Source: Oculina patagonica (Eukaryota). From it: a stretch of DNA of 64,000 bases. Positions 1 to 64,000 of this stretch are shown here, piece after piece. Position numbers and translations under genes: made by a program. The stretch lies in the NCBI RefSeq assembly GCF_052425735.1, contig NC_135759.1:32054001-32118000 (forward strand). Direction: 5' to 3'. The notes under the pieces were generated by a model that saw only the letters and a list, made by a program, of their open reading frames with translations, was not told the origin of the DNA and searched no databases. The stretch's first letter is position 1. Every line of letters begins with the position of its first letter.

Positions 1-3000
1 CCTTTTGTGGTTGTCGTTGTATTTGCTGCTGTTGGAATATAGTTTGACCATAAACGCCAGGAAATGTTGCTGAAAGAAATGATACCATGTATTAAACTGG
101 AAAGGCTAAGTAAAGTCTGCAGTTGGGTCAAAGTGGTCTACAGTACATTGCTAGAACCTATCTTGGCTTCCATAGCATGATGTGACTAGGAGTACTGCAA
201 CTCACTTTGGATTGGGGAGTAGGATACTTGAATGAACTTAACATTGTTATGCACAATTGAAAAGTTGAAGCCAAAGCAAAGTTGAAAAGAGACAATTATC
301 ATAATAAATTTACTGAACTAACTACAAGTAGTTTGGTTCATAAGGCAAAACTGAAAAACTTGTTATTGGACCTCATCTTCAGCTCAGTCAACAAAAGTTT
401 TAAAAAAGGACCTCAACCAACATTTCTGCTACAAAGTCATCAGGTAAGGTAGGTTAAGTCTGCATTCGAGCCTACTGGCCCATCAGGCTGGAGCTTTTCC
501 CAGTTTCCAGAGCATGAAGCAAATAGGAGTATTTTTACTCCCCCCTGAATGGGACGCTAGTCTATCGCAGGTTTACCTCCAGCATTAAATTTGCCAGTAT
601 CTGTTTATAGACCTGGGTGAAGTAAGGCACTGAGAGTAAAGTGTCTTGCCCAAGAACACAACACAGTGTCCCTGGCCAGGGCTCGAACCCGGACACCTCA
701 ATCCAGAGTCCAGCGCACTAACCATTAGGCCACCCACAAAGCCCTCAGACTGCCTCCATAACATCTTTGTATACTTTCTTACCATTGTACTGCTGTATTC
801 CAGAGTATGCCTGAGTAAGCGCATCTCCAGTCTGTATGTTACCACCAACACTAGTTACACCAGCGACATTACTGAGTCCAGGAATTCCCATACCAAGGGC
901 ACCAGCCCCCATTGTATTAAGATTACCAACACCCATCCCAGACATGTTCATACCTAGAGTAAAGCAAGTTCTAGTGTTACAAGTAATGAAATGAACATGC
1001 AATAATAAAAAAAGAAAAACGTTTTAATCAATATGCAGATGAAGGTCACACAAACTTGGAGATTTTTTCATTGAATTTTACAACATTTATGAAGGAAGAA
1101 AAAAGGGATGGGGGATAAGTGGATTTATAACACACAGGAGAAAAATGAAGACTTCAAAAGATTGAAATATTATTTTTAATTCTTAACATATAACAACCGA
1201 TACAATGCAAATCTTTTATTTCAAAACCTAAAAACTGACAGGTAGCAAGATTGAGGGTTCAATTTCTCGTGTGTAAAAGTGTTTTATTGCTCATGTTTTG
1301 TGGAATTTGAGATTAATCCACATCAAAATTGGAGGAAAGAAAAATTTAAACAGAAAAACCTCACCAAAAAGTTAAAAAAACTGAAATCAAAATCTTCACT
1401 TCTACTGGACTAGCGTTATCGTGCTTTGCACAGCCCAGCCCTAGACTTTGCCTGGATAATTAGGTACACAACATCCACACCTCTACAAGATTTCAAGTTG
1501 TGCATGAATCACCAATACTAAACTGATCATAGTTCTTACCAAGGCCAGTCATTCCTGGAACACCTTGTACTCCTATCATAGAAGAAGTGTTGGTAGCACC
1601 ACCTGCAGATAAGGCATTACTGTTCACTAAACCAGCTGTTCCTCCTACGATGTTATTCTGTGATGATACTGATTGCTGTACTGCTTGGTGCTGTTGCTGT
1701 TGTGCGGCGAGCACTGAAGCAGCTACAAGAGCACCCATCGTTCCAGGAGCCATAGCTAAAGCAAGCACAAAATGACAGACAGTTAATGACAAAGTCAAAT
1801 TAAATCTCAATGAAAACTGGCAATGATAAATCAACAACTTTAACGTCAACCAATTTGAAGACACAAGGAATGGAATGAGTTTAAAGCCAAACCTCTCCAC
1901 AATTGCCACCCTGACACAGAATTTACCCTTCCCCAATATCTCCAAATACAAATTGTTCTGACTGATCTCCATACATTTTCTTATGTTAGTTGGGAGAAAC
2001 TATTGAAATATCAGAGCAATTTTTTATTATTTTTATTTATTCTCATAACCTTTTTTTTTCTTTGATGAAGTTTTGATATTGTGAGGAGAAATTTGATGTT
2101 GGTCACCCTTTGGACTTGAAGAGTTTACGCTTTACATAAAGGTGGCTGTTCATTTCAGGAGGTCAGCTTACTATTGACTGGTACTGCACCAAGAGCTATA
2201 TAAGAGTCATGTAATTTATTTACCTGGTCCTGTGACACCTGGGATGACATTGAAACCAGATTGGATTGCTGCTGATGGGTTACTAGTTTGCTGTTGAAGA
2301 AACTATTAATTATCAAACATGAGCGAACAAGACTCGAGTCACCAACTTCCTCAAGTTCACACCTTTGCATTTGAACTAACAACACTGTGATTAAATAATA
2401 AAGATAAGATGTTCTACATGACACGAGCATGGGACAAAGAAAAATTCTGAGTCCCCGACGGGAATCGAACCCATGGCCTCCCAGATACCAGTTGGGCGCT
2501 CTAACCAACTGAGCTACGAGAGACTCGTTGTGAGCTAGGGCCATTTTTACTAGGTTGATATGTGACGCGTCCTGCATACTGCTAGGATCAGCAATGTCAA
2601 ATTCATCAAGTTTTGTAGTAAATAATAAAGATGGTAAATTTAAGCTCGGTAATAAATATCTTTATTATTCTTTATTATTTACAACACTGTGATTGTTCAT
2701 TTACCTTTGTACCATACACATAATTTCATGCCTCACTGCCAAAAGATTTTCCAAAAATATGTTGGTCCTCGCATGTACATGTAGTTTTCTTAGCTGCAGG
2801 TATTTGCCAACCAGTAGCTTTCTATTTGTCAGAACTGGCCAGCTGGTCTGGTGGTTAAATGGGCCTTTTACACGAGATTGTCCCACAAGTCCACCATAAC
2901 AATGTATAATATTTACATTTTGACAGGACAAATCTGACTAACAACAAAATTCTGTTCTCGGATATACATGTACCGGCCTAGCCCGCCAGTTCTGACAACT

Positions 3001-6000
3001 GGAAAGCGCTCTCAAACACCATGGCGAGACCTCAGATGTAACAGACCTAGGCCTGTTTAGTAAAATTTAATAATTAAGTGCTTCTTTCTCACCTGTTGAC
3101 AGGCAGCATTGTAATTTGCATGTTGAAAATAAGGAAATCCCATTCCTAATCCAATGTTCATGCCCATACCACCAAGAGCTACCATCTGCTGCATTTTCTT
3201 TTGAAGCTTTTCTTTTTCAGTATCTGCAAACTTAACAACTATAGGTGACGGGCAGCCCTGAAAAAGAAACAGCAATTAAACAGCGATTAGCCTATGAAAA
3301 TTCGATTAGCCTATGAAAACTCAAGAAATGTCCAAGATTTGACCCAAACAACTTGAACCAAAAATTCCACGCTGATGATCTAGCTCCACAAATAAATATG
3401 TTGTGTCTCTTTAAGCTCAGTAAGAATCATTTTGAGATGCTACATATTATCAATAGAGAATTTTGAAATCAAAGCTGAGGCATCTACTGGGTAGGAGATG
3501 AACGGAGAATCTGTTCAATCAAGCTTAAGTTCAGGCTAATTGATAAGTTTCAAAGCAACTCTTCAGACTTGCCATGGCATTCTAGAGAAACAGAAAATAA
3601 ATTGTAACAACAAACCTCCATTGTAGTACTGTTGTGCATCTCCGCAATCGCATTTTGAGCCTGCATTCTTGTTGGGAACTTTAAAAAGGCACAACCTAAA
3701 AAAATCATGACAGTTTTAGATAACTGCTTAATAATATTTAGTTTCTGAGGATTTGTATAATACATTTCACATCCTAAAACAAACAAATCACTTTTACAGA
3801 TATAACAAACCTCTACTTTTGCCATCGCTATCTTTTAAAATTGTCAACTCTTCTATTGTACCAAATGGGGAGAACATCATCCTTAGGTCATCCTCTGTCG
3901 CTTTTTTTGATATCATGCCAATGAACAGTTTACGGTCCTCTGTAAAACAACAGCAACAACAAAATAAAATATGAATAGAACAACAGGGACTAAAAGCTAA
4001 AGTTGTTACTCAGAGTTTGATGGAACCCAAAGATTATATAATTTATTTGAATCCAGTGTGCAAAGAAAGTTCTGTCCGATAGCCTGGCTTTGACTTTCGA
4101 CCTTTACCCCATTGGGGAAAATAGGCCATTGGTCGACAGCCTGAGGCTAGTAGATTTTTCTGTTGGGCAAGTGGATTATATTCATCCCCTGCTTGATGGG
4201 CAAGTAATGTAATTGGACATTTGTTTGTCAGCAGATGAAGGAGGCTATTGAAAAAAGCCTTTGGGCTAGTACACAGTGGCTTCAACTTGCCCAAAGGACA
4301 ATGTAGAAAATCTATTTTCTTTGCACCCAGTTAAAAATATATTGTAATTATTTTTGTCATCTGTCTGCTGATAATGTACTGGTTAATTTATAAAGACAAA
4401 TAAGATCTTGATCACTCTGGGAAACACAGTGTTTTTCATTATATCAAGAACTTGAGAGGCATTAATAAGATTGTCTTACCTAAGGTCAATACGACCAAGT
4501 ATGGACTGAAGTCTGTAAGATACTGGGCGGCGAACGCCTGGAATCAACTGCCAGACCGAGTAAGAACATTTGCTACACTACAGGCCTTNNNNNNNNNNNN
4601 NNNNNNNNNNNNNNNNNNNNNNNNNNNNNNNNNNNNNNNNNNNNNNNNNNNNNNNNNNNNNNNNNNNNNNNNNNNNNNNNNNNNNNNNNNNNNNNNNNNN
4701 NNNNNNNNNNNNNNNNNNNNNNNNNNNNNNNNNNNNNNNNNNNNNNNNNNNNNNNNNNNNNNNNNNNNNNNNNNNNNNNNNNNNNNNNNNNNNNNNNNGA
4801 CCTATGCTTGTCACTTTAAGGAGGCAGCATGGCTGAGTGGTTTAGGACGCTGGTGTTGTAATCCGGAGTTCCCGAGTTCAAACCCTCAGTCCCGCTTTGT
4901 ATATAACCAACTGGCCTTCCTTCTGCTAGTTGGGATTTTCAACTATGTTATGTTCATTTAAAATATTTGATTCCTCTGTTCAAGTGGCATGCCTGTAAAC
5001 TAGCTATCTCAAAGGGATGTGAAGCTAAGTGCATCACCACTATAAACAACATTTACATTTTTTTTTTACTTTCATAACTTGTCAACAAATGGTTTATAAT
5101 TCAGTTACTGAAGGTGTACAACTATTTCCAAAATTTTGTACTTCCATTGTCAGTGCATAGTTAGTGCCCAGCTCAAAACACGTCTAACTCACCAGAACTT
5201 TCCAACCCTAATGCCCAATGTCACATCATACAGTTGCCATAATTTGAAAAATAAAATTTACAACAACAAGTAAGCAGACTGTCTGCTGCACAGCAGCAAG
5301 GTAGTCTGTGACACCTGGTTTAAAGTTTTGAAAGTTTAAGTGTTGCTCCTCCTAAAGTGTCCACAATATTAAGATTTTCTCTTTTGTCTGTTAATCAATT
5401 TGAAACTTCAACAATCCCATCCATGGACAAGCCCTTGATGTTCAACACCAAGGGACGCCTAGTAGAGAGAGAAGGAATTGGCATCTCTCATCTTCAAATT
5501 TAAGAGATTGTGGACAAATGATGAGTGCCTCAATTTAATTTTTACATCTGACCAGCAGAAAATAATAACAAAAAATAACAACAATTAATAAATCCCCAAG
5601 CAGGAGATAACCCAAGGGAAAAAAGGATGTTGAATTTTCAATCTGATTGCCATATACTTTTTTACTTTAAATACTTTTGCAGAACCTTTTTGGAACGCAG
5701 TCAAAATTTAAGACATCGCAGCAGGGTACTAAGATTAAGTCAGATAGGATTACTACTAAACATGTTTGCGTGATTTATTCAGTATCAACACATTACTATC
5801 ACAAAATTTCTCAACTCACCAGATCTAGATTCACCCTCTGCTGGTTTAACTTGCATCGCATTTGGCATCTGTGAGAAAAAGAAAAAGAAAATGTGAAATA
5901 TCTCATCTGACACAATCCAGATCAGAAGTCTTGGAACAACAATAAAATGAAGGTCATTTTTAAACAAATTCTGTGTACTTTCTTTCTATTTGCCTCTCCT

Positions 6001-51700: not shown

Positions 51701-54700
51701 CACTCCCCTAAAGGGTCGTGTGTATACCGAGAAAATACAAGTGACTCGTGGGATATTCCATAGTATACCACTCGAAAGTGTTGCATAATAACTAGTATGT
51801 ATTTTACAGAGAAAACTTAAGTGAACCCTTTGCAGAAATGATACCTCACTTTACATATTACTTAAATTCAGCATTAAGCTATAAACTATGAACTTTAAAA
51901 CTCAGGAGAAGTTTGCAAAAAAATACTACCGGTATTAATTTTAGTAGTGCATTGAATGTGCAAAAACAAAGGTTTAGCTTGGACAGCAATGTATTGTTTT
52001 GTTGTGAATGTTTAGAAATCTATTGAGAGCTACAAACAACACTATATATTTCGTGGTTGATCTGAATAGGATGAAAAAAAAAAACAATTCTTACTACAAG
52101 GAATTTCAATCAGTTATGTCCCATGCACAATAACTTGCAACCATAACCACTCTCCAAAAACACTAATCCCCAAATTATGCCAACAGTAAAGTAAGCCTAC
52201 CCACTCTTTTGGAATGTTACAACTGTAAATATCTTACAAACCTCTCTTAGTTAGAAGGGCTGTATCCTCTGTTCTCAATGGGTTGCTCTTTTCCCAGGCA
52301 ATATACTTCTTCCAAATTTGCAACTTAAGTGGTTGAAAAAAAAAAAACAAGAAGTTCACAAGACTGATACTTAAACACACTGCGGCTAGTACACTTTGAA
52401 TGATATTAATCAAAATGAACGCTGACACAACAGAACATCTGATGTAATGGTATACAACTTTACTTGTGCCAAGTGGGAGGCTCCCTAGTGTCACTTCCTA
52501 ACTGGTTCTAACTTTAAAGTCTGTGGATAAAATCCCAAATAATGAAAGCAGAGATTCCAACCCTTTTTTAAGGAAAATAGGGAGTATTAATAAAAATTTT
52601 TAGCGCTGAAGGTGTGAGCCTCTAGGGGGGTCTGGGGCATGTTCCACTGGGAAATTTTGCAAATTAAGGTTCTCTCAAGTGCCATTTTTGGCATTTTGAC
52701 ATTATTTCTGAATTATTTTATAAGGTCTTTATTCTTTTCACAGATATTTTTGGAGCTTTTCTTTAGTTTGGTAAAGCTCAGATCGCAAAAAAGTACAAAA
52801 GATTAGCATTTTTTCTGTTGTTTTTAGAATTTCATGATAAATCAGGAGAATCTGATAAAAATCGGGAGAGCGGGAGGCAACGCATCAAATCCGGAGACTC
52901 CTGATCAGAGCGGGAGGGTTGGAATCTCTGTGAAAGCAACTTTGTGGTTCTTTCCTAGTCAGGCCTAGCATTAACAGTTGAGTGCAAAGAAATTTATAAA
53001 ATATACTAGTAAAAATACCTGTTTAGTTTCATCTGCACTTCCCTGCACAGGAACAGCAGGGTTTCCTTTCACTAATCCACGAGTTATAGCTTCATACTCC
53101 TAAAAAAGGGAAGCTAAAGTGAATTTTCCCGAACTTGAGTTGTTTCTAAATTACTATGTAATAGGTATATGAATTAATTGGTTTTTAATGGAGAGGAAGT
53201 AAGGTAGACAATGATTAAGACTTAAATTACTTCTAAAATATCATAACTCACATGGCCTTTAAATTGCTTTTTTTTTTATTTCAATATCACCAAATTTGTT
53301 TAAACAGGTGTAGTTTTTAGTCAGTGCAAAATACCATGTATCTTCATGCTGTTTTGCAGTACCAGTAGTCCGTGTTGGGGCCTGCAGGCTCTAAAACTAT
53401 TTACAGCCGACAGACAAATTATGGCAGCCTTATCTTAACTAACAGCCCTGGTACTGTTGGACTCATTACTCTTACAAAAATGAGCCTATTGACATGATTA
53501 CAGATCATCCTTTCCAAAACTTGACATTGAAGGGTTGAACCATCACAATAACTAAAACCATTTAGGGGCTGGTCATTGGCTGTTTTTATACTAGAGAAGT
53601 GTTACCTCTGCAGGGTTTTCTTAATAGGGAAAGCTAAAAAGGGGGGGAACCCCCTCCCAAAACCCTCTGGATGAGCTTCGGCAAAAATTTTGTTGTTCGT
53701 CTGGTTATGCATCTCTAGTATAAAGACAGGCACAAGACACATTACGCCTTCTAGACGAGCTTCCTTTCGTTATCCGTCTTTCAAGATGCATTTCGAAAAG
53801 TAGCTTGTCTAGACGGGTAACTCGTCTTGTGCCTGTCATTATACTAGAGACGCATAACCAGACAAACAAAAAAATTTTTTGCCAAAGCTCGTCCAGATGG
53901 GTAACTCGTATCTTAAGTATAAAAACGGCCATTATTTATAGGAGAGGGAAGGGCTGGTAGAAACGAGGGAGGCCATGTTCAAATGCTCCTGACCCTCCCC
54001 TTTTTGGAAGCACATTTTTTTACTGTCACTCCCCCTCCCCCCTCGCCCACTCCCTTAGAGGTCCCTGTGTGCATAAATTTATGTAATCCCCCTTTTTTCC
54101 TGCATTAAAATCATCAACCCTAGCCTCCCTCTCTGAATAATGGCTGGTCCCTTAGCATACCACTTAATAACCAATTTACAAACCACACAATAAGCAATAT
54201 TTACCTTTGAAACTCTTCTGGCATTCATGTAGTCTCTTGTTTTATCATCAATCAGTTTCTTAGCTAAAAGCTTGTTTACATTCTGAAATGGGAACACTTT
54301 TGCTTAGCTGCAATCTTTTAATTTTTAGATTCACATTTTTATTGGAGTGTCAGTGATACATTTGGTAGCTTATCGCTAATAATTTGGTGATACCCCCTTA
54401 AATATTTTCTTACTTAATTTATCTTATGCAGCAATAAATTGTGTAAGATGAAAATTAATGATTACATCTGGAGTCCACAACTAAAGGGTACAATTAAACT
54501 ATCTTCATGACATACGTAATATGTACAGAGCTTGAGGGCTGTCTACACACCTGTTCAAAAGCATTATATTCTCTCCATAGTGCTTCTAAATTTAAGATGG
54601 GAGTCACCACAGCTCTCTAAAAGAAATACATTTATTAAGATTAGTAACTTTTAATCTGGGAAGGGCACAGGAAAGACCACAAAATGATTTTAACATAAAG

Positions 54701-57700
54701 TTAGTTTCCTGATAGAAAAAAAGTGAAAATGATCTCCAATTTCTGAAGAAAGTTTATTGCTGTTTAAGACAAAAAATTAAAAGTAGAATAAAATGCAAGC
54801 ACCCTTGCGACTGTGCATTTATGTCACCAATATCGTATATTACCTGATAGACTTTTCTTATGGTGATAATCTTGCGGTTTTCTGCATAGCTGCCAACTGC
54901 ATCACTAAGAACGAAACAATTTAAATAACATATCAGTACAGAAATGCTAAGCCAGTTGGAATGATCAATGTTAATAGTTGCCAGTTTAAAGCAGTTTGTG
55001 TCTGGTGAACACGAATTCAGTGCTGCCCAATTGTGTGACAAACATTTGCAAATGATTATATCAAGACAATGACAAATGGCAGCACTTTCTCTAAATAAAA
55101 CTTTAAGAATCACATTAAAAATTCCTCTCTCAGTAGCAATCCCAATACCAATACAAACAGGGTTCAATTTGTTTTCGGACTCCCAAAATGTTTTCGGACT
55201 CCAAATTTTTTTGTTTATTAAACAAGTAATCAGTCTTTTTTGCTTAATAAACAAGTTTGACTAATGAAAGTTGCTTATTAAAAAAAAAAGACCCTATTTT
55301 TTAATTGATAGACAAAAAAGGTGGTATTTTTTGTTTATTACACAAAAATTTTTTGCTTATTAAACAAAAAACCCGCGCGCTTTTTGCTTATTAAACAAAA
55401 GTTTCACAACATTTTGTGCACACGAAAATCTTTACCTTCGGCCGCCATTACATACAAAAATATTGAGAGGAAAAACATTGCTACGGATGAATCATTATTT
55501 TAAAAACATATATATTAGAAGTCTCTACTGCTAAATCATTCCACTGAGGGAAAACAAAGGCATGACTTCCCTTTTAGGAAGAATATTTTCCAAAAGTTTG
55601 ACTACGCAGCGCGATCGATTGGCTGCGTTCAACGAGCTGCTTGTTGGGGATGCTCAAGTTTTAAATCGGAAACGAGCCCTCTTCATTTTATTAATTACAA
55701 AATAAAAACATCAAGAGATTTCTAAAAGCAGAAAAGACCGGGGATTTGAACGAAGATGGCCTGTTTGTCGTCGAGTTTGTCGGTGATATTAGATCTATTT
55801 TATAAACGACGAAATGAACAACTTTCTAGCGATGTGTTTTACGCCGGTCATGAAATTTGCACTTTGCAGCGTAATGTGGGAAAAATAAGGCACAACTCCG
55901 TGCAAAACCTCGGCAGCAATGGATAAATCATTGTTAAATGAAAAACTTTTAACAGAAGACTTGTCTGCTGCATCCTATTTAAGCGACCTTTCTTTTTCTG
56001 GAAGAATATTTTCCATGCATAAACGTTGTGCGATTTCGCGGCGAGCGATCGGCGATTCCGGAACGAGCTGCAAAGTCGAAAGTTTTTAAGCGATTCCTAG
56101 CAAATAAGGAGCTTTTTGAAGGCAGCAAGAACAGAAGATTTAAATAAACACAGCCCTATAAATATAAAGTCGTAGTATTAAATATGCAGTCGAGATAGCC
56201 GGTGATAAAATCTATTTTTAGACACGTTGACAAAATAAACAGCAGAGCTAGCTGTCATGTTCAAACGATTCACCCGGCAGACAGGGAAAATTACCACGGT
56301 CAGAAAAAAAATTCTTTTCGCGTCAACTTTCAAAATTTGTGCTGAATTCCCGTGCAAAAGCTCGAAAGGACTTAAAATTCCTAGGTTTATTAAAATTAAG
56401 CGGAGTTTTCAGAGGTGGAATTTCACCACGGACTTTTTTTACAACAGACTTGAAATGCCAGCTTATGTTTTGAATATCAAGCAAGAATAGCGCCTTTTGT
56501 TTATTAATTAAAAAAAGGTATAGCATTTTTAGTTATCAAACAAAAGTGCCACAACATTTTACGAACTTCATGCAGTCGTACGAGTACGGTGAAATCGATC
56601 TTGCAAAAGAAAACAGCGTAATGTCATACATGTAGACAGCTAATTAGAGTCACCAGTTTTCTTGAAAATATTTATAGGTTTTAACCAAAACGTGGCACGT
56701 TTTGTTTATTAAACAGTAACTTTTTTATAAAACAATTTGCTTTTCAACCGAAAACGGGTCATAACAGTCTAGCTTGCAAACATATTCTTATCTTCATGCA
56801 GCTACGTAACTACGGACAAAAATATTTGCGAGCAAAAACAACGCAATCATTCCACCCGAATTTAAGACAATGAGGCAAAGAGTTTTCTGAATGTAGCAAA
56901 AATGGGTCACTTTATTCTGGACAGGGCGAAATAAACAGTAGCGTGGTTTGTATATTTCCGCGATTCACACGAAAGTTTTATTTACCACGGTAAGTTTGTA
57001 CTTTACGCGACAACTGGACAAATTTGAACTGAATTATGTGCCGAGTGTCGGTGAAGTAAAATTTAAATAGAGAGAAGAACTGTAAAGCGAAAACTAGTGT
57101 GAAAACGTTACTGAAAAGAAACTCATGTTTTCAGTTCAGTGTTGACTTCTCGACGCGACTGAAACGAACACTTCGGTTTGATAAATAGAATTTAAAGGAA
57201 AGATAAAAACTCTCGGCTTTTTGCAATTCGTCGAGTTCGTTCGTACTGTAAAATTGACTTAGGTGCAGACAATGTACACAGGAGAATATTCATTCAAAAA
57301 ACAATCAAAATAGACTTGTAAAATCTGAGAACACATTCGATTCGTAAACCAGAAATATTTACGAGAAGATCGATCAAGAGATAAAATGTGTGAAGTTTTA
57401 ACGCATTCCGTCGAAATGGATTTTGGAAATGAAAGCTGGTGTTTAATTTGACGGACAATCTGCTGGCCAAAGATTTAAAACAGTTCATCGCACAAGAATT
57501 TATTTGTACTTGTTTTTATACGCTGCCCAAAATAATAATAACAAAAACAATCAAAACAGACTTGTGAAATCTGAGAACACATTCGATTCGTAGATCATGC
57601 AGAGATATTTACGCGAAGATCGATCAAGAGATAAAATGTGTTCTTCGGTGCGTTTCCGCTTGATTAAAAAACACACGTCCAGTAGAACAGAAAAATAGCA

Positions 57701-60700
57701 ATACAGTTATTAAAAGGCTTTTACCACTCAAGTAAACAAAGTCTTTCAACTGAAAGAGTTTTTTAGTTTGAATCAGGATTCCTATTTGAAAAGCAATGTC
57801 ACGCAACTCGCCGGCTAAGAAAACGCGAGAAAAGGTCGTTTTGTTAAATCTAATTGCCCTTTATTTTGAGCGAAAGTAGCTACAGAAACTTTTAAAACAT
57901 CTGGAGATTTTTGAATGATCGTTTCGAGCGATCGTTTTGCCGGGTAGAAAAAAAAACAGAGCTTGACAACTGGGAAGCAGTTTAACTTACAGTTTTCGTT
58001 GGCGCCAAAATGCTTTGCGCGGGAAAAATTTCAGACAGCTTTTAAAAAAGCTTCGGCAATTAAATTCAACACGACAATGAAAATACAATTATTTTGGTAT
58101 CAATCCACACTTTTTTAATAAACTTCAATATCAACTGACTGATCGAGAGAACAAATATGAGACATATGAGCTCACCTCTTAACAAGTCACAAGAACATCA
58201 GAGCCACGGCGCGGCGTCCTTAGCACAGAAATTTATGCACGTCTGTAGATTCTTTAGTTGTCTTTCCCTTTAAATATTTAAACCGCCATCAGTGATTTGA
58301 CCTGCTAAAAGTGATATGACTTGCATTTTCTTTGTTATACGCTTACAAACACTGTCCGGCCTAGTACATGTACGTATTGAACAGTGTCCAGCACTCCGTT
58401 AGTAAGTCTTGCTTACAAACAGATCAAAACGAATAGTTCTCAACCAAAATTGTTTTAAAGTTCGCTCCTGTTTTCTCGAATACGGTAGTCCCGGAACTCG
58501 CATTATAAGTCGCGTATGCACGTGTAGATTTCAACGGCGGTTCAACGGTTCACCTCAAAAATGACGACGAATTAAGTCCAATCAGCAAATCGCAGAATAG
58601 GCCATGTGAACAAATCTTGATTCCCCGACTGAGTTGAAGAAGGCACTATTTCTCCAATTTAACCAATTTTCGTGCCAAAACATTTGCACAAATGTCGCCA
58701 CCGCCGCTAAGCACAGAACTGTCGACTAGCCGAAAAACTTTACAGAGCTCTAACGATTAAGGTGGCTCCGTAGGGTTTTGAGATATTACGGCGCGCGCAC
58801 AAGTGATACCCATCAAGAGATCATTTTCGCGTTATTTTTTTAAACTAGCTTAATAAAAGCTGATGAAATATTAAAAACAAGGACTAAAATATGTTGTGCA
58901 TTATTCTTTTTTAAAATAACAGCCTTTGCTTTTGAGCTACATCTTCCTAAAAAGTCCTATTTTGTGGGTGTTTTTGTGGCTTTGATCTTAATTTTCTTTA
59001 ATTTTCTTCGGTGAAAAGTTTTGAAAATCTCCCAACTAATTGAATCTGATGAGAAGTAACTTTTAAAAACAAAAAAAGTGGGGGTTGTCCAGGTCGTTTT
59101 TTCGTTTTTGGTTATTTTGTGTTTTTTTGACCAAGCAAAAAAACTGGCTTACAAATTTTTTTAAAAAAACGGCAAAATGGGCAGTTAAAAAGGTATCACA
59201 TCTCTGCCAAATTTTAAGGATTTTCACCGAAGGAAACTCTAGTAAATTCCAGGCGAAATTTTTTATTTTCGCCCCGAAATAATTACGTCATCAGAATAGA
59301 AATTGTCCAAGATCGCTATTTGAGCATGCGCGAACTTTCGAACCATACGAGTTGATGTGTAAAGACGAGCGTTTCCCGTTGTTGTCGGTTTTTGTGCGAA
59401 TATCTGTTAACCCCAAGGTTAGTTAGAGACATACCCTAATCCTTTATGTAGCAGAATCTCTGAAATTCTGCTCGAAGTATCTCACAATCGCGGAGACTAT
59501 TTTTTATTTTGTCTTTTGCTTTCGATCGTACGAACTTCGCAAAAGCGGCCAGAAGCACCGCGGACGTTGTAAAAACCTTTTTAGGGTGTTGTAAACTCTT
59601 TAATCTGCTCAACACAGGAAAGTACAGGTGTTATTTCATTGGCAGGAAGCAAGTCTCGCGTTTTCTCGCCGAAAATTTCACGCTCGCGTGAAGCTGCCAT
59701 GTTTGTTTTGATTTGCCGGCATTTCAAGCTCGCCCTTTCGTACCCAGTCTTCGCGCGGTCAAGAAACCCTATGGAGCCACCTTATTAGGGAACTCACGTT
59801 CATCATTATAGGCGTGTCATCCAAATCTGTGACTGACACCTTATGACAGCGAGCACCGTGATTGGTTCCCGTCACGTGCCTTTATGACAGCAAGCGCTGT
59901 CATTGGTCACTGTGGACGCGCCATAAGCGATCAAAGCAGCGTGTTCGCAATTCAACGGTTTAACGGTGAACATTGGAGCTCTGTAAGTTTTTCGGCTAGT
60001 CGACAGTTCTGTGCTTTATAGCGGCGGTGGCGACATTTGTGCAAATGTTTTGGCTACGAAAATTGGTTAAATTGGAGAAATAGTGCCTTCTTCAACTCAG
60101 TCGGGGAATCAAGATTTGTTGACATGGCCTATTCTGCGATTTGCTGATTGGACTTAATTCGTCGTCATTTTTGACGGTGAACCGCCGTTGAAATCTACAC
60201 GTGCATACGCGACTTATAATGCGAGTTCCGGGACTACCGTATTCGAGAAAACAGGAGCGAACTTTAAAACAATTTTGGTTGAGAACTATTCGTTTTGTTC
60301 TGTTTGTAAGCAAGACTTACTAACGGAGTGCTGGACACTGTTCAATACGTACATGTACCAGGCCGGACAGTGTTTGTAAGCGTATAACATAGAAATTGCA
60401 AGTCATATCACTTTTAGCAGGTCAAATCACTGATGGCGGTTTAAATATTTAAAGGGAAAGACAACTAAAGAATCTACAGACGTGCATAAATTTCTGTGCT
60501 AAGGACGCCGCGCCGTGGCCCTGATGTTCTTGTGACTTGTTAAGAGGTGAGCTCATATGTCTCATATTTGTTCTCTCGATCAGTCAGTTGATATTGAAGT
60601 TTATTAAAAAAGTGTGGATTGATACCAAAAAATTGTATTTTCATTGTCGTGTTGAATTTAATTGCCGAAGCTTTTTTAAAAGCTGTCTGAAATTTTTCCC

Positions 60701-63636
60701 GCGCAAAGCATTTTGGCGCCAACGAAAACTGTAAGTTAAACTGCTTCCAGTTGTCAAGCTCTGTTTTTTTTTCTACCCGGCAAAACGATCGCTCGAAACG
60801 ATCATTCAAAAATCTCCAGATGTTTTAAAAGTTTCTGTAGCTACTTTCGCTCAAAATAAAGGGCAATTAGATTTAACAAAACGACCTTTTCTCGCGTTTT
60901 CTTAGCCGGCGAGTTGCGTGACATTACTTTTCAAATAGGAATCCTGATTCAAACTAAAAACTCTTTCAGTTGAAAGACTTTGTTTACTTGAGTGGTAAAA
61001 GCCTTTTAATAACTGTATTGCTATTTTTCTGTTCTACTGGACGTGTGTTTTTTAATCAAGCGGAAACGCACCGAAGAACACATTTTATCTCTTGATCGAT
61101 CTTCGCGTAAATATCTCTGCATGATCTACGAATCGAATGTGTTCTCAGATTTCACAAGTCTGTTTTGATTGTTTTTGTTATTATTATTTTGGGCAGCGTA
61201 TAAAAACAAGTACAAATAAATTCTTGTGCGATGAACTGTTTTAAATCTTTGGCCAGCAGATTGTCCGTCAAATTAAACACCAGCTTTCATTTCCAAAATC
61301 CATTTCGACGGAATGCGTTAAAACTTCACACATTTTATCTCTTGATCGATCTTCTCGTAAATATTTCTGGTTTACGAATCGAATGTGTTCTCAGATTTTA
61401 CAAGTCTATTTTGATTGTTTTTTGAATGAATATTCTCCTGTGTACATTGTCTGCACCTAAGTCAATTTTACAGTACGAACGAACTCGACGAATTGCAAAA
61501 AGCCGAGAGTTTTTATCTTTCCTTTAAATTCTATTTATCAAACCGAAGTGTTCGTTTCAGTCGCGTCGAGAAGTCAACACTGAACTGAAAACATGAGTTT
61601 CTTTTCAGTAACGTTTTCACACTAGTTTTCGCTTTACAGTTCCTTCTCTCTATTTAAATTTTACTTCACCGACACTCGGCACAATAATTCAGTTCAAATT
61701 TGTCCAGTTGTCGCGTAAAGTACAAACTTGATTTCAGACCGGGTAAAACTTTCGTGTGAATCGCGGAAATATACAAACCACGCTACTGTTTATTTCGCCC
61801 TGTCCAGAATAAAGTGACCCATTTTTGCTACATTCAGAAAACTCTTTGCCTCATTGTATTAAATTCGGGTGGAATGATTGCGTTGTTTTTGCTCGCAAAT
61901 ATTTTTGTCCGTAGTTACGTAGCTGCATGAAGATACGAATGTGTTTGCAAACTAGACTGTTATGACCCGTTTTCGGTTGAAAAGCAAATTGTTTAATAGT
62001 TTAATAAACAAAACGTGCCACGTTTTGGTTAAAACCTATAAATATTTTCAAGAAAACTGGTGACTCTAATTAGCTGTCTACATGTATGACATTACGCTGT
62101 TTTCTTTTGCAAGATCGATTTCACCGTACTCGTGACTGCATGAAGTTCGTAAAATGTTGTGGCACTTTTGTTTGATAACTAAAACCTATACCTTTTTTTA
62201 ATTAATAAACAAAAGGCGCTATTCTTGCTTGATATTCAAAACATAAGCTGGCATTTCAAGTCTGTTGTAAAAAAAGTCCGTGGTGAAAGTAATCGTTAGC
62301 TAGACTTACGCTTCATACATACAGTTCTTGAATGAAAACTCCGCTTAATTTTAATGAACCTAGGAATTTTAAGTCCTTTCGAGCTTTTGCACGGGAATTC
62401 AGCACAAATTTTGAAAGTTGACGCGAAAAGAATTTTTTTTCTGACCGTGGTAATTTTCCCTGTCTGCCGGGTGAATCGTTTGAACATGACAGCTAGCTCT
62501 GCTGTTTATTTTGTCAACGTGTCTAAAAATAGATTTTATCACCGGCTATCTCGACTGCATATTTAATACTACGACTTTATATTTATAGAGCTGTGTTTAT
62601 TTAAATCTTCTGCTCTTGCTGCCTTCAAAAAGCTCCTTATTTGCTAGAAATCGCTTAAAAACTTTCGACTTTGCAGCTCGTTCCGGAATCGCCGATCGCT
62701 CGCCGCGAAATCGCACAACGTTTAATGCATGGAAAATATTCTTCCAGAAAAAGAAAGGTCGCTTAAATAGGATGCAGCAGACAAGTCTTCTGTTAAAAGT
62801 TTTTCATTTAACAATGATTTATCCATTGCTGCCGAGGTTTTGCACGGAGTTGAGCCTTATTTTTCCCACATTACGCTGCAAAGTACAAATTTCATGACCG
62901 CGTAAAACACATCGCTAGAAAGTTGTTCATTTCGTCGTTTATAAAATAGATCTAATATCACCAACAAACTCGACGACAAACAGGCCATCTTCGTTCAAAT
63001 CCCCGGTTCTTTCTGCTTTTAGAAATCTCTTGATGTTTTTATTTTGTAATTAATAAAATGACGAGGGCTCGTTTCCGATTTAAAACTTGAGCATCCAACA
63101 AGCAGCTCGTTGAACGCAGCCGATCGATCGCGCTGCGTAGTCAAACTTTTGGAAAATATTCTTCCTAAAAGGGAAGTCATGCCTTTGTTTTCCCTCAGTG
63201 GAATGATTTAGCAGTAGAGACTTCTAATATATATGTTGTTAAAATAATGATTCATCCGTAGCGATGTTTTTCCTCTCAATATTTTTGTATGTAATGGCGG
63301 CCGAAGGTAAAGATTTTCGTGTGCACAAAATGTTGTGAAACTTTTGTTTAATAAGCAAAAAGCGCGCGGGTTTTTTGTTTAATAAGCAAAAAATTTTTGT
63401 GTAATAAACAAAAAATACCACCTTTTTTGTCTATCAATTAAAAAATAGGGTCTTTTTTGTTTAATAAGCAACTTTCATTAGTCAAACTTGTTTATTAAGC
63501 AAAAAAGACTGATTACTTGTTTAATAAACAAAAAAATTTGGAGTCCGAAAACATTTTGGGAGTCCGAAAACAAATTGAACCCTGTTTACAATAGTTCTTA
63601 CCCTGACTTCAGAAAATTCACAAAATCCATCCAGAT
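44423..63636 (-). CDS. CSTF3: Cleavage stimulation factor subunit 3 (CstF-77, Suf family), 5'-partial
   Basis: 20 phase-consistent exons: 63602-63636, 54844-54904, 54551-54616, 54205-54282, 53019-53099, 52242-52323, 51347-51456, 50309-50425, 49692-49766, 48659-48760, 48369-48410, 48222-48263, 48030-48090, 47698-47761, 47029-47125, 46802-46900, 45921-46062, 45458-45549, 44856-44928, 44423-44613. Motifs [71 protein letters not shown]. Confidence 0.97.
46372..46620 (+). mobile_element. tRNA-derived SINE
   Basis: GTGGTGACCTAATGG ... GGTTCGAGCCCTGGCC ... TGTTCTTGGGCATGACACTTTACTCTCA. Confidence 0.8.
47158..47663. mobile_element. CAGGG-terminal MITE carrying a nested palindromic insertion (47245-47486)
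   Basis: Termini as in the 42910 element. Nested ~75-bp inverted arms (TGTTCATCACCAGAGAGGTAAACTCTGATATGCCTATC..) surround three 25-bp repeats AAAAATCAGATACCCGGGCGGGATT. Confidence 0.75.
48430..48606. repeat. Compound degenerate tetranucleotide microsatellite (GACT/GACC/GGAT)
   Basis: Seen directly in the CSTF3 intron. Confidence 0.85.
48900..49490 (+). mobile_element. 5'-truncated LINE (CR1/L2-like) 3' fragment, antisense in a CSTF3 intron
   Basis: [60 protein letters not shown], followed by a 3'UTR and AATAAA. Confidence 0.9.
50780..51258. mobile_element. piggyBac-like non-autonomous element
   Basis: TTAA|CCCCTGCCTACCA ... TGGTAGGCAAGGGG|TTAA. Confidence 0.85.
52549..52930. mobile_element. 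CAG-terminal MITE
   Basis: TIR CAGAGATTCCAACCCT / AGGGTTGGAATCTCTG. TGAAAG is duplicated on both flanks. Confidence 0.8.
53667..53897. repeat. ~230-bp imperfect palindrome (MITE-like)
   Basis: TCTGGTTATGCATCTCTAGTATAA..GACAGGCACAAGAC versus GTCTTGTGCCTGTC..TTATACTAGAGACGCATAACCAGA. Confidence 0.75.
55158..63584. mobile_element. Giant foldback (palindromic) non-autonomous element: ~3.6 kb inverted arms 55158-58755 and 59971-63584
   Basis: Termini CAGGGTTCAATTTGTTTTCGGACTCCC / GGGAGTCCGAAAACAAATTGAACCCTG. Mirrored ORF pairs appear in the track (57294- / 61231+, 55321+ / 63239-, 56257+ / 62296-). Subterminal TTG(T/C)TTATTAA repeats are present; no transposase ORF. Confidence 0.92.
58761..59781. 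mobile_element. Kolobok-like element nested at the palindrome centre
   Basis: TTAA|GGTGGCTCCGTAGGGTTT ... AAACCCTATGGAGCCACC|TTAT. The 18-bp TIR has 1 mismatch and the right TSD has 1 mismatch. Confidence 0.75.
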
Positions 63637-64000
63637 CTGTAGGAAGCAAAACAGTAGAGTAGGAATCAGTACAACAGTTCTGACTGAATTTTCATAAAAA
63701 TATTGAAATGCACCGTCAAGTGTTATTATTTTATCATCTATAGTATTATGTCTAAAATAATGTTCTGTTGTGCTTTTTTCCATGGCCATGCAACCAGTTT
63801 GCTTAAAAATGGAGATGTCACAGTGACAGACTGTCATTTTCAGACTTTCCACATGCTATGACTGCCTCAGTGTAAGTCATTATTATATTAAAACAAACAA
63901 AAGTTTACTATAGTAAATTACTATTTTAAGGAAAATAATTTCTTTGTAATTGCTTGTTGTTTCAGACTTCCACTACCTTTTTACATGACTTTTTAAGATA

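Follow-up and report, generated by a model that had tools for sequence, protein, structure and literature searches.

A giant multi-copy foldback element with kilobase-scale arms in a CSTF3 intron of the coral Oculina patagonica

We analyzed a 64,000-nucleotide stretch of the genome of the coral Oculina patagonica (contig NC_135759.1, positions 32,054,001 to 32,118,000 of the forward strand; hereafter the window), in which an intron of the CSTF3 gene is largely made up of a giant foldback element. The exon upstream of this intron ends at 63602 (last letters GG), the downstream exon (54904-54844) begins with T, and the two join in frame. The joined pieces matched residues 122-154 of CstF-77 (2ooe_A, E = 1.2e-10; human CSTF3, 6uro_E, E = 3.9e-10), as expected from an earlier reading of the DNA made without database searches (the sequence-only reading), which had placed the element in a CSTF3 intron with in-phase exons on both sides. 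The target TACA occupies intron positions +12 to +15, 11 nt downstream of the splice donor, and the element begins at +16. With considerable confidence, we regard this element as a copy of a low-copy, recently mobile, non-autonomous cut-and-paste foldback DNA transposon family that makes a 4-bp AT-rich target-site duplication (TSD).

The element consists of two inverted arms and a short centre (Table 1). Reverse-complementary arms of about 3.6 kb had been proposed at 55158-63584, and both a repeat search and self-BLAST put them almost exactly there. In the repeat search, which covered window positions 54000-64000, the arms appeared as blocks of 41-687 nt (55155-58740 and 59985-63587) that were 97-100% complementary; in an alignment of 16 arms, the left and right arms of the window copy differed by 1.0% substitutions, in addition to indels. 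Once a nested element is subtracted, 198 bp of spacer are left, close to the 200 bp estimated before, and the spacer was about 192 bp long in copies that lack the nested element. The longest stop-to-stop open reading frame (ORF) in one arm plus the centre had 83 amino acids, and none of the ten longest ORFs of the element reached a curated Pfam cut-off of any kind, in agreement with the earlier view that the element has no coding capacity.

Clustered subterminal repeats, also pointed out previously, were found at both ends. These were two direct copies of GTTTTCGGAC(TCC) and six copies of the palindromic 15-mer TTGYTTAWTAARCAA per terminus. The 15-mer occurred 18 times in the window versus 2.3 times expected, a number reached in 0 of 100 shuffles. 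Genome-wide, the paired GTTTTCGGAC motif was detected 25 times (none in the reversed control). All of these places were foldback-family ends, some of them embedded in other repeats. Paired TTGYTTAWTAARCAA sites were detected 61 times per strand (none in the control), and every listed place was foldback-family sequence. Tandem Repeats Finder reported only short arrays with a period of 18-30 bp within the terminal 300 bp or so of each arm; the rest of the arm is unique sequence.

The 529-Mb assembly was then searched with the termini. Using the terminal 403 bp as a query, we found that six further contigs carry pairs of inverted ends separated by 7.3-8.4 kb, and at least seven full copies with the same arm-spacer-arm layout were present at unrelated loci. 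Copies examined in full (C11:2.46 Mb, C1262, C9:1.78 Mb, C6:35.2 Mb, C6:33.0 Mb and C8:12.5 Mb) had arms of approximately 3.5 kb and a spacer of approximately 192 bp. In addition, we identified three derivatives, of 4.7 kb (C6:5.10 Mb), 7.5 kb (C4:56.0 Mb, rearranged) and 1.05 kb (C9:12.47 Mb), as well as solo ends. A second subfamily, designated B (C1:36.09 Mb, C463 and one end on C2), was about 25% diverged from subfamily A and likewise had no coding capacity. Its arms were 3.37 kb long and 98.9% alike by BLAST. Subfamilies A and B were collinear across the entire arm and through the spacer, with a fairly even identity of 50-80% per 100 bp and no strongly conserved island. The terminal motifs were kept in kind, including GTTTYCGGAC twice and palindromes of the GCTTAWTAAGC type, and subfamily B had two copies of GTTTCCGGAC at the position equivalent to the paired GTTTTCGGAC repeats. 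Because subfamilies A and B have homologous spacers and homologous arm boundaries, the two-arm layout must be older than their split.

Evidence from outside the assembly pointed in the same direction. Arm sequence was present at many times single-copy depth in public contigs carrying the same species label, in contigs carrying two other species labels and in a coral metagenome, and in all four datasets loose ends started exactly at position 55156. Six metagenome contigs bore the same 24-nt end as the foldback family. The element is thus a genuine multi-copy foldback-type transposable element with kilobase-scale arms and no coding capacity. Since the same architecture recurs at no fewer than seven loci with differing flanks and TSDs, and since public contigs end at the same boundary, a fold-back read chimera is excluded for the element as a whole, as the sequence-only reading had held; the fine detail of the window copy remains uncertain.

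Two members of the family deserve separate mention. Metagenome contig Ga0099818_1094995 (616-1250) has the identical 24-nt end AACAGGTGTCAGATTGTTTCCGGAC, followed by 61-64% identity to both subfamilies over about 600 bp; it represents a third, more diverged lineage and is non-coding over the available 3.6 kb. On either side of the 4.7-kb derivative (C6:5104888-5109583), the arm is reduced to positions 1-1254. The interior of the derivative is unrelated to the family and likewise forms an inverted repeat, in which ORFs at 1977-2360 (plus strand) and 3361-3723 (minus strand) mirror each other. The break at arm position 1254 coincides with the most variable site of the family.

Analysis of the ends changed both the termini and the TSD. 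The ends had been given as CAGGG...CCCTG; these letters are present, but in the window AA precedes CAGGG and TT follows CCCTG. Among the ends examined in the genome, nearly all had the same AA and TT next to CAGG and CCTG, as did those in the six metagenome contigs. The true termini are therefore AACAGGG...CCCTGTT. Past the AA, the foldback ends read CAGGGTTCAA and CAGGTGTCAG. The flanking 8-mers AATACAAA and TTTACAAT, previously judged not to be a clean duplication, looked unclean because they have the form xx-TACA-AA and TT-TACA-yy; when AA and TT are counted as termini, a clean 4-bp duplication, TACA, is left. In the AACAGG...CCTGTT register, perfect flanking 4-mers were observed in seven of the nine copies that kept both ends: TACA in the window copy, TATA in the C11 copy, TTAT in the C1262 copy, CTAG in the C6:33 Mb copy, ACAA in the C6:5.1 Mb copy, ATAA in the C4 copy and AAAA in a subfamily B copy. 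We estimated the chance of matching 4-mers at about 0.005 per pair. The TSD length of this family is therefore 4 bp.

Several copies were very young. With copies oriented by their spacers, the 16-arm alignment gave distances of 0.1% between left arms and 0.0-0.1% between right arms for the window, C11 and C1262 copies; left and right arms within each of these copies differed by 0.8-1.0%. Compared as whole elements over 7.3-8.4 kb, the three copies differed by 7-17 substitutions. The arm-specific differences of about 1% had been inherited arm by arm, and the whole element was therefore copied, with no rebuilding from a single arm. One master, whose arms were already about 1% diverged, was copied three times very recently.

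Further evidence of mobility came from the nested element in the centre. The sequence-only reading had recognized it as a Kolobok element, and its TTAA flanks and GG..CC ends support a Kolobok-type identity, the signature of this superfamily being a TTAA duplication together with 5′-RR..YY-3′ termini (PMC9587614). The nested element was present at the identical site in the C11 copy, there with TTAA on both sides. The C1262 copy had an empty site (CGA-TTAA-GGG), and C9a read TTGA at that place. Given that two of these copies carry the nested element at one site and C1262 lacks it, the composite transposed after nesting. A first look at the nested-element family yielded 249 candidates, including many full-length copies with 93-99% identity, and all five other copies inspected had TTAA on both sides and GG..CC ends (GGTGGCTCCRTAGGGTTT). 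Judging from the identity of its copies, this family was recently active.

Table 1. Positions of the foldback element, its parts and its host intron in the window
Feature	Position	Strand	Remarks
Host CSTF3 intron	54905-63601	-	8,697 bp; 262 bp minus the element and one TACA
Splice sites of the intron	donor GTAAGA from 63601; acceptor AG 54906-54905	-	read from the sequence
Whole foldback element	55156-63586 (C2:32,109,156-32,117,586)		8,431 bp; two inverted arms and centre
Left TSD copy, TACA	55152-55155	.	same letters as 63587-63590
Left arm	55156-58753	+	3,598 bp; begins AACAGGGTTCAATTTG; repeat search, self-BLAST, 16-arm alignment
Direct GTTTTCGGAC(TCC) repeats, two	55171-55199	+	16 nt from the left tip; candidate transposase-binding sites
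Palindromic 15-mer TTGYTTAWTAARCAA, six	55211-55398	.	subterminal repeats
Private stretches of the window copy	56408-56421, 56716-56726, 56978-56993, 61730-61748		+14, +11, +16 and +19, respectively
Internal direct duplication in the arm	57285-57641	+	period about 246 bp; units about 87-95% alike; mirror copy 61078-61434
Central unrepeated spacer	58754-59972	+	198 bp after subtracting the nested element and one TTAA
TTAA duplication of the nested element, left	58757-58760	.	right copy (59782-59787) reads TTATTA, 2 bp inserted
Nested element	58761-59781	+	1,021 bp; non-autonomous, Kolobok-type; ends GGTGGCTCCGTAGGGTTT...AAACCCTATGGAGCCACC
Tandem spacer motifs, two	59844-59922	+	TGACAGC..GT(G/C)ATTGG..ACG(T/C)GCC; common to subfamily B
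Right arm	59973-63586	-	3,614 bp; final letters CAAATTGAACCCTGTT; repeat search, self-BLAST, 16-arm alignment
Right TSD copy, TACA	63587-63590	.	read directly

The two arms inside one copy evolve in concert over long times, differing by 0.4-1.4% when lineages are 3-25% apart. Within-copy arm divergence was 0.5% in the C6:33 Mb copy (2.8-3.6% to other lineages), 1.4% in the C8 copy (2.8-4.9% to other lineages) and 0.4% in the subfamily B copy on C1 (25% from subfamily A and 1.0-1.7% from the second B copy). Arms that stay less than 1.5% apart while lineages drift by 25% require repeated homogenisation, and we infer that arm-to-arm gene conversion maintains their likeness.

The arms also differ from one another in blocks, as had been noticed near 56410 and at 56985/61730, and these block differences are real in the sequence. 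Relative to its near-identical sisters, the window copy had 4 private substitutions and about 14 private indels. The private sites coincided with indel polymorphisms of the family, where an ancestral sequence persists at greater length in older copies and in subfamily B and is gone from young copies; part of this sequence survives in the window copy, and different parts in its two arms. These private stretches stem either from ectopic conversion in patches, with an older copy as donor, or from noise that mis-mapped reads introduced in polishing.

Similarity to other repeats offers a clue to the origin of the arm sequence. At 70-75% similarity, arm positions 363-1094 matched the interior part of a non-autonomous family not related to the foldback (L047-L049), whose GAGTTGTAGCGTTACACGAGCC ends and 9-bp duplication identify it as MULE-like. 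The approximately 700 bp common to this interior and the foldback arm suggest sequence exchange between unrelated non-autonomous families. Further short arm segments matched scattered repeats, and the first 143 bp of the arm correspond to an internal fragment of an amplified Tc1-like miniature inverted-repeat transposable element (MITE) of about 480 bp with CAGTACTTACCC... ends (L023 1349-1826; L024-L030). Taken together, these matches show the arms to be mosaic filler and not decayed genes.

The repeats involved have features of their own. Members of the MULE-like family (L047 1819-2773, L048 1930-3162, L049 5100-6540) are 1.0-1.4 kb long and have terminal inverted repeats (TIRs) of about 115 bp and GAGTCA subrepeats; an uninterrupted ORF of 1,187 amino acids adjoins the member on C11:9.47 Mb (L049 1362-4922, minus strand). 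Within the MITE, the 143-bp fragment is bounded by AACAGGG...CCCTGTT without a clean flanking duplication; judging by these bounds, the arm tip seems once to have been a mini-element. We considered the 143-bp terminal matches (L023-L030) as independent insertions, and rejected this since they are one fragment carried inside an amplifying MITE. A repeat found at about 400 places (e.g., C1:539549, C11:23269805 and C2:32184059) and containing GTTTTCAARTTGTTTCCGCRC matched 13-14 of 20 foldback-tip positions; it could be a distant relative of the foldback family, or the match could be due to chance.

The spacer, too, contains a recognizable feature. The stretch of its two tandem motifs also contains CACGTG and has a counterpart at approximately 4740-4830 of the subfamily B locus (L045); local window identity between A and B was 0.67-0.73 there, near the top of the range. 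In our own reading, these motifs resemble CCAAT boxes and could be a promoter or a protein-binding site.

Several searches were directed at a partner element. A search with terminal 22-24-mers, allowing up to 3 mismatches, returned only non-coding foldback members, besides a few unexamined 3-mismatch matches at about the control level. Genome searches for paired GTTTYCGGAC and for the paired palindromic 15-mer returned only non-coding family members, and nothing in the reversed control. Weak terminal matches on C10 and C5 (L041-L044) were considered and rejected as partner, because they are short or interrupted derivatives and the nearby ORFs are host-like zinc-finger genes. The L047-L049 family (GAGTTGTAGCG ends) was rejected as autonomous partner as well, being a different non-autonomous family with a 9-bp duplication. 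Hence the transposase with the same ends that the sequence-only reading had suggested looking for did not emerge from terminal-pattern searches of the genome, and mobilisation would occur in trans.

The insertion site was also compared with public data. Contigs from a run of the same species, from the coral metagenome and from another species label matched the left flank (55001-55156) and then continued with 30, 28 and 124 non-element letters, respectively. They provide a lead, in that some alleles, or a sister species, may have an empty site here. As an empty-site check, the assembly was also searched for a second haplotig of the left flank, and none was present.

A possible course of events can be outlined for a cut-and-paste foldback family. 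The architecture would go back to a single event preceding the split of the subfamilies, in which an ancestor with one arm underwent inverted duplication. A transposase acting in trans would recognize the terminal AACAGG, the two GTTTYCGGAC motifs and the six TTGYTTAWTAARCAA sites per end, and would excise and reinsert the whole palindrome, integration duplicating 4 bp of AT-rich target. Gene conversion between the arms would keep them alike. In CSTF3, such an insertion 11 nt past the donor would have turned a 262-bp intron into one of 8.7 kb.

Some observations weigh against this account. Two of the nine two-ended copies did not have a perfect 4-bp duplication, each being off by a 1-bp indel, and the 1-kb derivative did not have any. 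Neither an excision nor an empty-site allele was read directly, and the contigs that run past 55156 are only suggestive. No autonomous element or transposase with foldback ends was found in the assembly, for which terminal-pattern searches only, and no protein-level search, were made; the six metagenome contigs with the same 24-nt end had no transposase either and were non-coding in the parts available. Finally, conversion may not be the whole reason for the arm likeness of old copies, part of which could stem from recent insertion by masters that were not sampled.

Which transposase would mobilise the family is less clear than its structure. Sola, Ginger1 and Academ are superfamilies with 4-bp TSDs, and the mobilising enzyme could come from one of these or from a Kolobok lineage without TTAA specificity. 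We view this assignment as possible but tentative. The 4-bp duplication was observed directly, Kolobok elements are abundant in this coral genome, and the AA...TT ends of the family agree with the 5′-RR...YY-3′ termini of Kolobok. Moreover, a 4-bp TSD other than TTAA is compatible with KolobokP-like lineages, as KolobokP makes 3-5-bp duplications without strong target preference (PMC9587614). However, none of the eight foldback duplications is TTAA and no transposase is linked to the foldback ends. In addition, KolobokP has not been reported from Cnidaria, and its long terminal repeats (450-660 bp, with short TIRs of their own), which flank the transposase gene, are direct (PMC9587614).

It is rather unlikely, though worth stating, that the family belongs to an undescribed DNA-transposon lineage, in which hAT-like CAGG ends are enclosed in AA and TT, TSDs are 4 bp long and non-specific, and a 7-kb non-coding palindrome, its layout kept by conversion through about 25% divergence, still jumps in a genome without any element that encodes a transposase and has such ends. 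If so, mobilisation would depend on an unlinked or domesticated enzyme, or on a palindrome-dependent propagation step.

The sequence-only reading had leaned toward hAT, according to which a non-autonomous element of this superfamily is mobilised by a hAT transposase. hAT elements have 8-bp TSDs, short TIRs and, typically, clustered subterminal repeats. Such repeats are present here, and the CAGG(G/T)..TCA ends of the family, which read CAGGGTTCAA and CAGGTGTCAG, resemble hAT termini. Nevertheless, a standard hAT element is ruled out by the TSD and a hAT origin appears improbable: the duplication was 4 bp and not 8 bp in seven of nine copies, and when an 8-bp register was tried, each of the six subfamily A copies with a perfect TSD mismatched at 2-3 of the outer positions (1, 2, 7 and 8), the mismatch being systematic (AA in the left flank, TT in the right). 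Nor was a hAT-like element with these ends found in terminal-pattern genome searches. The comparisons with P/Galileo (7-8 bp) and with Mutator, whose TSD is 9-10 bp, that had been made alongside fail on the 4-bp TSD for the same reason.

Another way to account for the missing partner is that the palindrome uses a hairpin or cruciform to spread or to be renewed, one arm being regenerated from the other, without a classical terminal-repeat transposase. This would explain why no autonomous partner emerged from terminal-pattern genome searches, why arms are 98.6-99.6% alike in lineages that are 3-25% apart, and why the interior of the 4.7-kb derivative is again palindromic. We think it very unlikely, since the 1% by which left and right arms differ was passed on arm by arm to all three of the youngest copies, and clean 4-bp duplications with conserved terminal motifs are a signature of transposase-mediated integration. 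An assembly artefact, i.e., a fold-back chimeric long read or palindromic mis-join, can be dismissed: palindromes are a known failure mode of long-read assembly and the excess of small private indels (about 14, versus 4 private substitutions) hints at consensus or polishing noise in the window copy, but arm-spacer-arm structures are present at no fewer than seven loci as well as in the subfamily that is 25% diverged, every one having flanks and a duplication of its own, CSTF3 exons are in frame on both sides, and independent contigs stop at the same boundary.

The element is a clean and well-bounded case of a giant foldback transposon in a cnidarian. A full-text literature search retrieved no paper on foldback elements in corals and, as judged without comparison to Repbase or Dfam, the family would be new, whereas its structure is of a kind already known. 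Its noteworthy features are the size of the unique-sequence arms, which are among the longest known to us, their concerted evolution and the missing transposase. The family illustrates that a large palindrome can transpose intact, nested passenger included, and that a foldback can sit 11 nt from the splice donor of an essential mRNA 3′-end-processing gene. With regard to annotation, the element explains the 8.7-kb CSTF3 intron, and an 8-bp pseudo-TSD is resolved into AA/TT termini and a 4-bp TSD. More generally, perfect palindromes of kilobase scale in coral genomes are especially prone to assembly error, to rearrangement and to giving rise to long double-stranded RNA.

Comparison with known systems places the family in the foldback structural class, as it has long arms, a short spacer, several loci each with its own TSD, and no transposase gene. 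It resembles the FB elements of Drosophila in that the arms make up nearly the whole element, the spacer is small, most copies have no coding sequence, the elements are mobile with TSDs, and size variants arise by internal deletion. Drosophila FB arms are, however, built of tandem subrepeats and FB duplications are 9 bp long; the coral arms are 3.5 kb of unique mosaic sequence without a tandem-subrepeat build, repeats are confined to the terminal 250 bp or so, and the TSD is 4 bp, so the family is not FB proper. With non-autonomous hAT elements and MITEs it has in common CAGG-type ends and clustered subterminal repeats, but it differs in its 4-bp TSD, in the AA and TT outside CAGG and CCTG, and in having kilobase-scale arms in place of short TIRs. 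Galileo TIRs reach about 1.2 kb. Like the coral family, Galileo is foldback-like, with long TIRs and mostly non-autonomous copies, and its constraint is concentrated in the terminal 100 bp or so (PMC4168063). Its duplications measure 7 bp, rarely 8 bp, and favour GTANTAC, and a P-type transposase can be identified for it (PMC4168063), whereas the coral family has 4-bp TSDs, 3.5-kb arms and no known transposase. Kolobok and KolobokP, finally, share with the coral family RR...YY termini, a duplication compatible with 4 bp (3-5 bp in KolobokP) and, in the case of KolobokP, unusually long terminal repeats; classical Kolobok is specific for TTAA, and the repeats of KolobokP are direct, whereas the coral arms are inverted.

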